A stretch of 64,000 bases of DNA from Hemiscyllium ocellatum (lineage: Eukaryota): positions 24,118,001-24,182,000 of the forward strand of contig NC_083417.1 in the NCBI RefSeq assembly GCF_020745735.1, read 5' to 3'. The position numbers were made by a program, and so were the translations under genes. The notes under the pieces are model-generated. The model was given only the letters and a program-made list of their open reading frames with translations, searched no databases and was not told the DNA's origin. Below, piece after piece: positions 49,118 to 56,441 of this stretch (the stretch's first letter is position 1; each line of letters opens with the position of its first letter).

Positions 49118-49154
49118 ATGGGCATCTCAAGCAGCCAGAGGAAACGTTGGAAGG
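49118..49154 (+). CDS. SPATA33: SPATA33-like protein, coding exon 1
   Basis: GTC-ATG-G start; MGISSSQRKRWK then G|GTAAAG, 37 nt, phase 1; basic MGxxxS N-terminus like mammalian SPATA33; lies between CHMP1A and CDK10 as in human. Confidence 0.65.
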
Positions 49155-50831
49155 GTAAAGTATAAAAGTTAGTCCTCAGTTGGCACCAAGTTTTTGTTTA
49201 AAAGATTGAGCTGTGGTTTATTTTAAAATTCTTTTATTGGTGATCCTGTTTCATGTACAATTTTTAATTTTGACCATTGGTGTGATTTTTAAGCAGCTGG
49301 TGGAAATCTTTGCTTTCCTCTTTTAAGTTGCCTGTTTACATCTGTTGTGTTGCTGGAAACATTGTACAAGCAAGGAAGTCAAGTCCTCAGCCTCGAGGGT
49401 CATAAGCCAAAGTATCTAGGACAGCCAGCCAACAGCTAAGGGTCAACGCTGTCGTTAACAACCAAAAGTTGTACATCACCTTAGCAGAATGTAGTCCTGG
49501 CAATTTTGCTGTTGTTTGTAGTGTGAAAATCAACCAAACCATAAAGGCAATTAGCTTTTATCTGGACTGAAACTAAAATGAACTTGAATTGCCATACCAA
49601 CTATTCCCTATCATTGCACTAGTCCAATTGATCAACCTGAAAAACACTTTAGGATTGGACTGCACAGTAACAAGTAATATTTGTACCTCACAAATGGCCA
49701 TTACCACTCCTGACAAGACAGAATCATCTTCTCTTGAATATTAATGAAGGTATTACCATCAATGAATTCCCTCATCATCAACATCCTGGGAAATTACCAT
49801 GGACCAGAAACTTAACTTGGTCAATAGTACAAGTTATGGTTACAAATTCAATTACAAATAACCACTTGACTCTATATCATCCACAAAATGCAGTTCAGAA
49901 ATGTGATAGAATAGTCTCCATTTCCTACGACATCAGCATGTGGAGTGTATTGTATCATAATAAAATAATATCCAATAATAAAATCCTGAGGGTGGTATCC
50001 ACTTCGGTCTCACGCGTGGGCTAGCAAGCGTCCTTCTGCTGAAATCCTAGGGACTGTGACTCTGAAGCTGAATCTTATCTCATTAGCAGAACTGTTGTTC
50101 TCTCCTTTTAATGGTCATTTCTTAACTCACTCACTGTCATTTCTTTGAAGTGTACACTTGGTGTCCTACTGTAGAGAAGGAATATTAATCTTCATTCAAA
50201 CTGGGCTGGAATACAAAGATGTGAAAGTTTTAGGAACATAGTAACATAGGAGTAGGTCATTCACCCCACCAATGGCCATTTACCATCATTATTTGGTAAT
50301 TTGCAACTTCAGTGTTGTTGGGCCAAAATCATGGAACCTCCAGACAGCATTGTGGGTATACTGAAACCAAATGGACTGCAATGGCCAGATTCTTGCTCGG
50401 CAGTAGTGAGGTGCTAGTTGATACTTGTTATTGATTGTTAAGTGCCTTTTTTAACACCACAACTCACGTCATTAATATTCAAACTTCTACTGCAGGAAAC
50501 TCACCAAACAAGCTAGACATCAAGAAAATGGAACAAAGAAACCAGACTGTGCAGCTAGTGGATTCACCACTTGCTCTGATCGACTTCCACATTAGTTACT
50601 GGGTAACAACATCTTGGAGCACGCTGAACAGGCACTAGGTGCACACACCTTCATTCCTGGACATTCTCATCTGACATGTATCAATCCATCATTACCATCC
50701 TGCCTCTTCCACTGCTGGCTGACATTCAATCTGAAATCACAGTGCACATCAACATCCAGCTTTGAAAGGCTGCAATGGAGATAATTTGCACACAGGCACC
50801 CAGCTCACAGTCTGCATCCCAAGACCACCTC

Positions 50832-51058
50832 GGATGACTATGTGGAGTTTGCACATTCTCCCCATGTCTGCATGGGTTTCCTCTGGGTGTTCAGGTTTCC
50901 TCCCACAGTCAGAAGATTTGCAGTTTAGATGGATTGGTCATGGGAAATGCAGGGTGACAAAGATAGGGTAAGGGGATGGGTCAAGTTAGGATACCTTTTG
51001 GAGGGTCAGTGTAGACACTGGCCGAATAGCCTGCTTCCACACTGTAGGGATTCTACAA
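50832..51058 (+). mobile_element. HE1/V-SINE-like SINE, partial
   Basis: Core and tail match the family. Confidence 0.7.
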
Positions 51059-51220
51059 TTTTATATTTAAAAAAAGAAATTTGCTCACTGTGCTCATTTG
51101 TGTCGCACCTAACTGCAGACTCATAGCATCCCTGCCTTGTCTTGTGATACCAATGGTGCAGTCATAACAACAAGCAGCTCGCCTCATTGTTAAGCAATCC
51201 TCACCTAAGGGGGTGCAAAT

Positions 51221-51530
51221 TAGATTAGATTAGACTTACAGTGTGGAAACAGGCCCTTTGGCCCAACAAGTCCACACCGACCCGCCGAAGCGAAACCCAC
51301 CCATACCCCTACATTACCCCTTACCTAACACTACGGGCAATTTAGCATGGCCAATTCACCTGACCCGCACATCTTTGGACTGTGGGAGGAAACCGGAGCA
51401 CCCGGAGGAAACCCACGCAGACACGGGGAGAACGTGCAAACTCCACACAGTCAGTCACCTGAGTCGGGAATTGAACCGGGTCTCTGGCGCTGTGAGGCAG
51501 CAGTGCTAACCACTGTGCCACCGTGCTGCC
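51221..51530 (-). mobile_element. tRNA-derived SINE (HE1/V-SINE-like), full length
   Basis: Reverse complement of the 52212-52515 family, with A/B boxes and tail. Confidence 0.88.
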
Positions 51531-51531
51531 A

Positions 51532-53709: not shown

Positions 53710-54360
53710 AACCAGAAATTGCTGAAAAATCTCAGCAGGTCTGGCAGCACTAGTGGAGAGGAATCAGTTGATTTTCGGGTTCAGTGAACATTCCTCAGAA
53801 CTAATGGTATCTTGGAAAAAAGATGGCTTTTATGCAGAATATAGGGTGAGGGAGGGGGTAAGGAGTAAATGATAGGTGGAGGTACAGCCCAAAGAGAGAG
53901 AACAGTTGAACAGATAAAGGAATGGATAATGGTTAGCTTAGGAGAATGAATAGCTGCTAATGCGGAATATTAGTGGCTAACAATGAGTAGTGTGTTTGGG
54001 GTTGGGGTAAGGACATGGGAGAAGGGGCCTCAAGCCCTAAAATTGGCGAACTTGACATTGAGTCCAGAAGACTGTAAGGTTCCCACACAGAAATGAGGTG
54101 CTGTTTTTTCAGCTTGCACTGAGCTTTGCTGAAGCACTGCAGCAAACCTGAGATCGCGATGTTGGCCAGGGAGTAGGGTGGTGTGTTAAAGTGGCAGGTA
54201 ACTGGAAGCTCAAGGTCTTTTTTGCGGGTAGAATGTCAGTGTTCTGTGAAGAAGTCCCCAGATTGTGCTTCATTTTCCTAATGTAGAGGAGACTACGTAT
54301 GAGCAGTGGATGGACCCTGGTCTGTGGTCATGAAATGGTATGGAAGGTGCGAGCACACGT
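53710..54360 (-). mobile_element. Old Penelope-like element fragment
   Basis: Degenerate nucleotide similarity to the GIY-YIG C-terminus and terminal repeat of the other PLE copies. Confidence 0.6.
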
Positions 54361-54499
54361 TTATTGCTTTCACAGAGAGACCCTCTCAAACACCCAACAG
54401 TTAAGTTGGGGAACATTAATGCATAGAGTAATAGTCATGTACAAGTCATTTTCATCTATGCCTCAATCGATTTTCTTTGTTCACTCTCACTATGTCTCA

Positions 54500-55960
54500 G
54501 TGTATTTACTGGTTCAGCAGCTGGGGTTGAGGGAGTCTGGTGAGTTGTTGAACCCCATTGACCCTGGAGATTTTGGGGGAGAATGTCTCCTGGTGTGCTG
54601 ACTTTGGACTAGCCAGTTGGGTCAAATATTTTCTTGCCACAGATAAGCTGACCCTATTGTCTTTGAACTTCCAAATGTCACAGTGAATTGACACTTGGAA
54701 GACACAGAGGGAGTTGGAGAGCCTGGCCACCTCTGCAATCTCCTGAATAGGGTTGGGGGTGGGTGTATATATGTATGGAACCATATCCGGATTGGTTTCA
54801 CCTGGCGTCATCCTGTCTCCTTTTGAGGAGGATGGGCTACCTGAACTGGTGTTAAGCTTCCCTGCCCCTCTTTGACATGTCTTTGGTCCTGAGGATCAAT
54901 GGGTAGGGTGATAGAGTGTAAGTGTGTGTGCACTTCTCCTGCAGGCCTTAAGAATGCCAGGTTTGATTCTCTTGGCAGTGCCAATTTGTCTATGGACAAG
55001 TGATGGCAGGATTGGCTGCTCTGGCAAAGTGGGTCATTGCATCACATATGCTGCTGTTGCTCTGTGCTGATTACCAAAATCGGTGAGCAGGTGCTTTGTC
55101 CCTGGTTGTCCTCCAAGTGCCAGTTGTGCGTGTCTTTAATTTCTTGGCCTCATCTGGACCTGTCACTGTGAAGTGTTCACTAGACTGTCTCTAGGTCTAT
55201 CGTTCCCTCTGAGGTATCACTATCTGGACTGGTTTGGAGTTGCAGGAGGTAGCCTTGGCAATGTTTTCTTTGAAATCAGGTTGAGGTTAGGGCTTCATCT
55301 GGAGCTTGTTGCTTTTCCATAGAGGTCGTGGAGTGGGGATTAGCGAAACCTGCAAGACAAAAGACCTGTGATTAGAAGTTTTGTGCAAAGGTTGAGACCA
55401 CTGGCAACGTTAATGAAAGAGTTGCTGTGGAATGAAGGATGGTACTTAGTTGTTTGGTGAGACATGTATGTGTCTGCACTCCTGCAGGAGTGTTCCCAGC
55501 CTCTATCTGCACCACCACCACCACCCCCCCACCCCGGTAGGGAGTGAGGACACCAATCTCATGTACCCCATCACCATTTGGGCTTTGTTCCGTTATGGGC
55601 TGACTTCTCAGCAAAATGGGACAGATTACAGTGAGTAGCAGGTGCATGTGGGGATGAGCTGGTAAAGTATACTGAAGTACTGAGCAAGTGGTGTGTAGAC
55701 TTGCTGGTGTGGGAGATTGAGGAGAGCAAATGAAGATTGGTATTGCATGTAATCCTGAAAGTGCTAGAGCATGATCCTTGGGAGGTGGGTGCAGTCGCAG
55801 AGACAGAGTAATTGTGAAGTAACAGAGAAAAAGTGTTCTGATGGATATTCATTGATTGTTGATTATTTTCCAGGGATTGGGACATGGAAATGAAATTGAA
55901 CATGAGAGGTGTCATAGGCTGAGTAGGTAGTTGACACAGCCAGTTTGGTAAGATGAGAAA
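54500..55960 (-). mobile_element. Ancient non-CR1 LINE relic (possibly Ingi/Vingi, I-group)
   Basis: Minus-strand peptide remnants in collinear order: MTPLMFNFIS (LAPLLFNIY-like), LHSTATLSL (LRTSALAL-like), TTGTWRTT (ITGTLRST-like), IHCDIWKF. Confidence 0.45.
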
Positions 55961-56262
55961 ATCTGCTGGGTCTCGAGCTGAAACCACCCCTCCCCACCAA
56001 AATAAAAGCTTAACACAACTCTGACTTAGCTAAATAAAGTAAGATTCAGGCTAATATTAATATTGAAATTGGAATTAGCCATTCCGGTGTTGCCTGGTTT
56101 TCAGGTTATGGTGCGGTTTGCTGAACAAAATGGGAAAGAAGTACAAATCATAGAATAAGTATAAAGTCAGAGGTCACGCTTTTGATCTATTATGGAATTC
56201 TGTTAAATCTCTTATTGTATAGCGCTTGGGCTTTGATTTAGTTTTTTAAATAATTTCTTTAG

Positions 56263-56441
56263 ATAAGATCCTCCGGTCAAAGAAGGAAGACAACATAGAC
56301 AAAATATTTCCTCATCCGACAATTGTAGTTACACCTTCGTCATCTACATCTAACTGGGGAAATGATTTATCCGATCAAACAGAGAAGAGAGAAGATTCCG
56401 TCAGAAAACATTTTATTGCCAGTATTTGGAGGAAAAAGTAA
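56263..56441 (+). CDS. SPATA33: SPATA33-like protein, last coding exon with PxIxIT-type motif
   Basis: ttctttag| phase-1 acceptor; (D)KILRSKKEDNIDKIFPHPTIVVTPSSSTSNWGNDLSDQTEKREDSVRKHFIASIWRKK*; PTIVVT corresponds to the SPATA33 PQIIIT motif. Confidence 0.62.

Follow-up and report, generated by a model that had tools for sequence, protein, structure and literature searches.

A two-exon microprotein gene at the CHMP1A-CDK10 locus of the epaulette shark, a likely positional orthologue of mammalian SPATA33 with a predicted calcineurin-docking motif

Introduction

In a 64,000-nucleotide stretch of the epaulette shark (Hemiscyllium ocellatum) genome (contig NC_083417.1, forward-strand positions 24,118,001 to 24,182,000, hereafter the window), we find a two-exon gene, placed head-to-head with CHMP1A and upstream of CDK10, that encodes a microprotein of 71 residues. 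It is likely that this is an unannotated protein-coding gene, the positional orthologue of mammalian SPATA33 in an ancestral short form, whose product would be held on membranes by a lipid anchor and would bring calcineurin there through a short docking strand. That the gene is real, conserved and coding we hold with high confidence, and its standing as the positional orthologue of SPATA33 is very likely.

SPATA33, whose expression is testis-enriched and which acts in sperm motility, has been stated to be 'present exclusively in mammals', as a gene newly evolved there (PMC3699523), and later papers repeat that it is conserved in mammals (PMC7937689, PMC8536318). In the mouse, SPATA33 binds calcineurin through the sequence PQIIIT and brings calcineurin to mitochondria, and mutation of the proline, the first isoleucine or the last isoleucine of this motif reduces or abolishes binding (PMC8536318). 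The C-terminus of the mouse protein binds VDAC2 (PMC7937689), and an N-myristoylation site has been predicted in it (PMC3699523). Calcimembrin (C16orf74, also CLMB or MICT1) is a disordered microprotein that is myristoylated and S-acylated and that tethers calcineurin to membranes; through LDVPDIIITPP(p)T it occupies the PxIxIT groove, the dissociation constant being about 14 nM, and the affinity of this motif gains about 20-fold from phosphorylation at +3 and benefits as well from a hydrophobic residue at –1 (PMC12612047). The literature searched held no paper naming SPATA33 together with C16orf74, and no description of a fish or shark SPATA33 was found in a search limited to zebrafish co-mentions.

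Results

A two-exon gene model with a predicted PxIxIT motif

A first-pass annotation of the window had proposed two phase-compatible exons, missing from the list of open reading frames (ORFs), that splice to a 71-residue protein carrying PTIVVT. Splice sites, frame and product were all reproduced: reading of the plus strand gave two coding exons bounded by a GT donor and an AG acceptor and joined in phase 1, and scripted splicing returned a protein identical to the one proposed (coordinates in Table 1). Exon 1 reads ATG GGC ATC ... AAG G, with G at both –3 and +4 of the start codon context, and its leftover G joins the AT of exon 2 to form the codon for Asp13. The exon carries a consensus for N-myristoylation at Gly2 (MGISSS start) and the beginning of a polybasic patch, RKRWKDKILRSKK. 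The 71-residue product is predicted to be disordered, contains no Cys and, with FPHPTIVVT at the motif, has no LxVP. The strict pattern P.[IV].[IV]T occurs just twice in the six frames of the whole 64-kb window.

It had also been remarked that PHPTIVVT is close to PHPVIVIT, from the selected NFAT-competitor peptide PVIVIT (GPHPVIVITGPHEE), and the two are indeed identical at 6/8 positions, including the His at –1. Unlike the shark sequence, PVIVIT is an engineered peptide that corresponds to no gene, and the shark has Thr at the first x and Val at the second Ile position.

The suspicion that the gene was unannotated was borne out. The H. ocellatum assembly has no gene called within 10 kb upstream of CHMP1A, the slot between CHMP1A and CDK10 is without a gene call in all seven fish assemblies examined (H. 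ocellatum among them), and exon 2, used as query in a word-indexed search across 5.8 billion proteins, retrieved no candidate.

The same exon pair lies beside CHMP1A in other fishes

DNA was fetched around CHMP1A in other species, the sharks covered being Hemiscylliidae only. The two-exon, phase-1 model was found at the same site in Chiloscyllium, Leucoraja, Callorhinchus and Polyodon, with a first coding exon of 37 nt in all of these except Callorhinchus, where it is 40 nt. Chiloscyllium punctatum retains the ATG, the donor, the acceptor, both exons and HPTIVVT; its exon 2 has an open frame with an in-frame 12-nt insertion, and its protein is 81% identical to that of Hemiscyllium. In the skate Leucoraja erinacea, exon 1 (MGISRSSLKKSM plus G, donor gtaaag) is followed 9.4 kb away by an exon 2 encoding ...IPPEIVVTSASDTSW..., and the protein starts MGISRS and carries PEIVVTSAS. 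In the chimaera Callorhinchus milii, CDK10 and CHMP1A are 3.3 kb apart, and the gap contains exon 1 (MGASSSNHHKQHK plus G, donor gtaacg) and, about 0.5 kb further, exon 2 (ttttcag before AT...), which encodes ...KLSVPAIVVTSASATS...; the 67-residue product of this phase-1 model starts MGASSS and carries PAIVVTSAS. The corresponding gap in the paddlefish Polyodon spathula holds exon 1 (MGAIPCKQSDHA plus G, donor gtaagc) and, beyond an intron of about 0.75 kb, exon 2 (...LTVPKIIITPPSTEEL...), giving a 73-residue product with an MGAIPC start and PKIIITPPS. In Amia calva only the motif exon was seen, in phase 1 and at the edge of the fetched locus (...PPTIIVTAPSNEDL, PTIIVTAPS). The order CHMP1A(–), gene(+), CDK10(+) of the window is also that of Callorhinchus and Polyodon. 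Because the same exon pair, phase, start and motif recur syntenically in four further fish lineages, and spliced RNA is found in skate, chance is excluded as their source.

Within the intron of the window gene, at 51240-52640, lie several repeat copies that resemble one another and occur in both orientations; ORF fragments such as ...RCEAAVLTT... are found among them. These and other repeats account for the expansion of the intron, which measures about 0.5 kb in chimaera and 7.1 kb in Hemiscyllium.

In an alignment of seven species, including bat, fish and chondrichthyan orthologues, no column is invariant apart from P, I and T within PxIxIT and the Ser at +3. The sequence TSAS after the motif is common to chimaera, skate and bat SPATA33 (bat IPKIIITSAS; chimaera VPAIVVTSAS). 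At the other end of the protein, the pattern MG[^EDRKHPFYW]xx[STAGCN][^P] occurs in 5/5 complete fish models (Hemiscyllium, Chiloscyllium, Callorhinchus, Leucoraja and Polyodon), and the bat start MGCTHSG, judged by eye, also fits a PROSITE-type myristoylation pattern. Next to Gly2, Polyodon has Cys6 and bat Cys3; the shark has the polybasic patch there instead. The residues fixed over about 450 million years fit the reading first given to the gene, a lipid anchor plus a calcineurin dock, as far as sequence can tell. Constraint appears at long range only and is limited to the start, the splice phase, the motif and the +3 Ser, as would be expected if a disordered protein served to carry short linear motifs.

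Skate transcripts join the two exons directly

Searching with a profile built from the fish exon-2 peptides brought up a single database protein, a 59-residue ORF from Logan assemblies of sequencing runs. Its five Logan contigs, from five separate skate runs, align to the skate genome as two blocks of 98-100% identity; in them exon 1 is joined to exon 2 across 9.4 kb at the exact predicted bases (...AGCATGG followed by GTTTTTCA...). The runs are SRR13269312, SRR13269315, SRR13269316, SRR13269322 and SRR13269331. The skate orthologue is transcribed and spliced as the two-exon model predicts. Read from the first ATG, the contigs hold a 70-residue ORF; the ORF caller for the public protein collection began the protein at the second Met, hiding the Gly2 signal, an example of how such microproteins come to be mis-recorded. 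A middle exon, which had been raised as possibly missed, is rejected for skate, whose mRNA passes directly from exon 1 to exon 2.

Relation to SPATA33 and to C16orf74

The CHMP1A flank of the bat Myotis lucifugus is nearly all N, and Myotis brandtii served as the mammal reference. In the latter, the slot between CDK10 and CHMP1A is an annotated 127-residue gene with Pfam PF15382 (DUF4609), the SPATA33 (C16orf55) family. Against its last exon (...VVIPKIIITSASNETL...WGPYARHRNPST...), the DUF4609 model aligns in full at 104.6 bits; an upstream exon with the start MGCTHSG... is 130 nt long and ends in phase 1, the joining of these exons being our own reading and not the database model. With the first exons of CHMP1A and CDK10 located in the window, the synteny that had been noted for mammalian SPATA33 holds in the shark. 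The window gene lies between CHMP1A and CDK10, diverges from CHMP1A and shares the strand of CDK10; it has an MG start that fits the myristoylation consensus, and its MG exon is joined in phase 1 to a last exon that carries PxIxIT early, followed by xxS. Slot, strand, MG start, intron phase and motif position are common to bat SPATA33, whose coding region can likewise be read as two exons, and to the fish genes.

Differences are found in size and in the C-terminus. Mammalian SPATA33 has about 115-139 residues against 71 in the shark, and the bat first exon has 43 codons against 12. The shark protein is without the C-terminal two thirds of DUF4609, including WGPYxRHRNPST, which in the mouse lies in the VDAC2-binding half; it falls below the Pfam threshold and has a polybasic patch instead.

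DUF4609 was the best Pfam match for Polyodon (15.5 bits, E 0.016), for Callorhinchus (14.2 bits, E 0.041) and for a 29-residue Leucoraja fragment (14.1 bits, E 0.045), to be read against a gathering score of 27 bits. Support from Pfam is fragile, because the full skate protein was unmatched although its 29-residue fragment gave E 0.045. The calcimembrin family (PF15366, DUF4597; gathering score 26.5 bits) scored 13.5 bits with Callorhinchus and 13.7 bits with Polyodon, both below its cut-off, and did not match the window protein; no Pfam family besides these two was reported for the fish orthologues. A profile of the fish sequences aligned to the bat SPATA33 exon by hhalign gave P 3.1e-5 over 23 columns. 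In a protein-language-model Atlas, SPATA33 and C16orf74 clusters came top for 3/3 queries (shark, Amia and skate).

Judged by sequence, the protein is equally close to calcimembrin/C16orf74 and to SPATA33. The case for orthology is therefore made by position and gene structure and not by a Pfam model; the confinement of constraint to start, phase, motif and +3 Ser leads to the same conclusion. The description of the gene as a divergent SPATA33 thus stands by position and gene structure and does not stand by the DUF4609 profile, which the shark protein fails to match.

Evidence against the assignment and alternative readings

Several observations weigh against our interpretation. Pfam matched no family to Hemiscyllium exon 2, the Chiloscyllium orthologue or the full skate protein, so that the window protein has no sequence-model match to SPATA33 (DUF4609) or to C16orf74 (DUF4597), and in the three orthologues that do match DUF4609 the scores are about half the gathering score. 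The Atlas scores, 0.65-0.80, are in the range that the tool rates as leads only. The likeness to SPATA33 extends over no more than about 23 residues surrounding a short linear motif, and such motifs can arise convergently. The C-terminal WGPYxRHRNPST block was not found in any fish or chondrichthyan orthologue aligned, in line with the earlier remark that WGPYxRHR is unrecognisable in the shark. A phmmer search of 1.84 billion representative proteins with exon 2 returned low-complexity matches only; these long, multi-stretch low-complexity proteins were rejected as spurious. Transcript support comes from skate only, the Hemiscyllium gene itself being known from genome sequence alone. Finally, a comparison of Hemiscyllium with Chiloscyllium shows the exons to be no better kept than the flanking DNA (89-93% identity), and the ratio of non-synonymous to synonymous rates (dN/dS) is 0.93, from 11 non-synonymous and 3 synonymous changes (14 substitutions in total). 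In the dN/dS check that had been suggested, then, the open frame was kept, and constraint on substitutions is not visible at that distance.

A dN/dS of about 1 would also be expected if the transcript were a non-coding by-product of the bidirectional CHMP1A promoter with a fortuitous ORF, and this reading could further point to the lack of the gene from every annotation checked and to a proximal 3' untranslated region (3'UTR) that is more conserved than the coding tail. We regard it as scarcely credible, given that chimaera, skate, sharks and paddlefish all preserve the open frame with its start codon, the length of exon 1, the intron phase and an 8-residue motif, and that the bat orthologue is a studied protein; chance-ORF and long non-coding RNA readings were rejected on this deep conservation. 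A conserved microprotein might instead use its PxIxIT-like strand for another partner, with calcineurin not being its ligand in sharks. The binding data come from mammals only, Val replaces the canonical second Ile, and the hemiscylliid C-terminal tail HFIASIWRKK is lineage-specific while the remainder of the protein evolves freely; the invariant residues are nevertheless exactly the calcineurin-docking P, I and T plus the affinity-tuning +3 phospho-acceptor, and mouse SPATA33 mutated at P, the first I or the last I loses or weakens binding, which makes another partner very unlikely.

The alternative that deserves most weight, unlikely as it is, concerns ancestry. C16orf74 occupies another locus in mammals. 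The gene could nonetheless be orthologous or pro-orthologous to it, either as a lipidated calcineurin tether of about 70 residues ancestral to both SPATA33 and C16orf74, or as a member of the C16orf74 lineage. In size (67-75 residues) and build (disorder, Gly2 with a second membrane signal, PxIxIT, and Ser or Thr as +3 phospho-acceptor) the fish proteins match calcimembrin. Callorhinchus (LSVPAIVVT, locus 9043-9017, minus) and Polyodon (LTVPKIIIT, locus 8572-8546, minus, then PPS) even have a composite LxVPxIxIT motif, which was not seen in hemiscylliid sharks, skate or Amia. The E-values of the two Pfam families are nearly equal, C16orf74 ranks first in the Atlas when skate or Amia is the query, and members of both families occur together in one Atlas cluster. 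Against this ancestry, the slot is that of SPATA33 in a mammal (bat), DUF4609 scores slightly above DUF4597 wherever either matches, and the TSAS flank is common to chimaera, skate and bat SPATA33. The window protein itself has a phospho-acceptor at the calcimembrin +3 position (Ser39), but this is Ser, not Thr, with no Pro after; it has no N-terminal Cys to S-acylate, and FPHP stands where calcimembrin has the overlapping LxVP (LDVP). Positional orthology with SPATA33 is accordingly the reading that we carry forward.

Neighbouring genes, the shared promoter interval and the 3'UTR

The gene order in the window is CHMP1A(–), the candidate gene(+), CDK10(+). CHMP1A exons downstream of its first, at 40357-40970 on the minus strand, are 100% identical to Hemiscyllium ocellatum CHMP1A, and about 240 bp separate the first coding bases of CHMP1A from the ATG of the candidate gene. 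This interval contains two perfect palindromes of the cAMP response element (CRE), TGACGTCA, at 48961-48968 and 49013-49020, together with two CACGTG boxes. Two of the three TGACGTCA sites in the window thus fall inside the interval, with 0.28 expected in the entire window. CRE-like sites are also present in the corresponding intervals of skate (about 9700-9900 of the skate locus) and chimaera (about 9730-9790).

Downstream of the stop codon, about the first 70 nt of the 3'UTR (GAAGTTACA..., TTGAAATGCA..., TTATAAAGA..TACAAAAG) are common to the epaulette shark and the little skate (skate contig 328-411). Window positions 56403-56514 align to the skate mRNA with 67% identity over 114 nt (E 3e-6), and the 3'UTR block is more conserved between shark and skate than the coding tail immediately upstream. 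This suggests a possible post-transcriptional control element.

Two repeat features were observed within the neighbouring genes. A Penelope-type insertion at 44220-45573 lies within the CHMP1A intron between exon 1 (48.87 kb) and the exons at or below 40.97 kb. A C-rich minisatellite occupies 63004-64000, built of a 25-nt unit repeated about 33 times along with units of 33 and 66 nt; its GC content is 69% and its strand skew is extreme. It begins about 120 bp past CDK10 exon 1 and presumably sits in CDK10 intron 1.

Table 1. Positions of the candidate gene, its predicted motifs and its flanking features in the window
Feature	Position	Strand	Details
CHMP1A exon 1 coding start	48872-48878	–	ATGGATG, then gt donor at 48871-48870
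Shared bidirectional promoter and 5'UTR interval	48879-49117	.	about 240 bp, GC-rich
Coding exon 1	49118-49154	+	37 nt; MGISSSQRKRWK plus first base of codon 13; donor AAGG/gtaaag
Intron	49155-56262	+	7.1 kb, phase 1, rich in interspersed repeats
Coding exon 2	56263-56441	+	residues 13-71; preceded by ttctttag; TAA stop at 56439-56441
PxIxIT calcineurin-docking motif (predicted), PTIVVT	56316-56333	+	residues 31-36; PH precedes
Ser39, +3 after PTIVVT, candidate phospho-switch	56340-56342	+	Ser column invariant in 7 orthologues aligned
Proximal 3'UTR block	56442-56514	+	conserved shark-skate
CDK10 exon 1	62795-62884	+	tblastn with Callorhinchus and Polyodon CDK10 first exons, E 4e-8 and 2e-5

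Discussion

What is observed directly is the structure of the gene, its synteny, its conservation among jawed vertebrates and the splicing of the skate RNA; the mechanism that follows is a proposal. The CRE-rich bidirectional promoter shared with CHMP1A probably drives the two-exon mRNA; in which tissue it would do so is a matter of inference. The protein would then be N-myristoylated at Gly2, a modification that we think probable in the shark, and the adjacent polybasic patch would act as a second membrane signal holding it on acidic membranes. The PTIVVT strand, which probably docks calcineurin, would occupy the PxIxIT groove of calcineurin A and so tether the phosphatase to that membrane. 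Phosphorylation of the invariant +3 Ser (Ser39) may tune the affinity, by analogy with calcimembrin.

The C-terminal block, which belongs to the VDAC2-binding half of mouse SPATA33, is absent from the fish proteins, and mitochondrial anchoring is therefore read as a later mammalian addition: probably the lipid anchor is ancestral and the mitochondrial VDAC2 anchor was added in mammals. More tentatively, and with the balance of our judgement slightly against it, SPATA33 and calcimembrin/C16orf74 might be the two surviving branches of one ancestral microprotein of about 70 residues, a myristoylated PxIxITxxS/T calcineurin tether present in the ancestor of jawed vertebrates. The genes of shark, skate, chimaera and paddlefish would keep that state between CHMP1A and CDK10, and the SPATA33 of mammalian sperm mitochondria would be derived, having gained a VDAC2-binding C-terminus.

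Annotation misses conserved microprotein genes, as the slot left empty in 7/7 fish assemblies illustrates. The fish genes supply natural PxIxIT variants (PTIVVT, PAIVVT and PEIVVT) and lead to the prediction that phosphorylation of the +3 Ser regulates the affinity of SPATA33 for calcineurin, mammals included. A positional orthologue in fishes that keeps just the Gly2 signal, the PxIxIT strand and the +3 Ser would counter the mammal-only view of SPATA33 and would mean that the calcineurin-SPATA33 module arose before cartilaginous and bony fishes diverged. These genes would thereby mark the minimal functional core of SPATA33 and tie it to the mechanism of calcimembrin.

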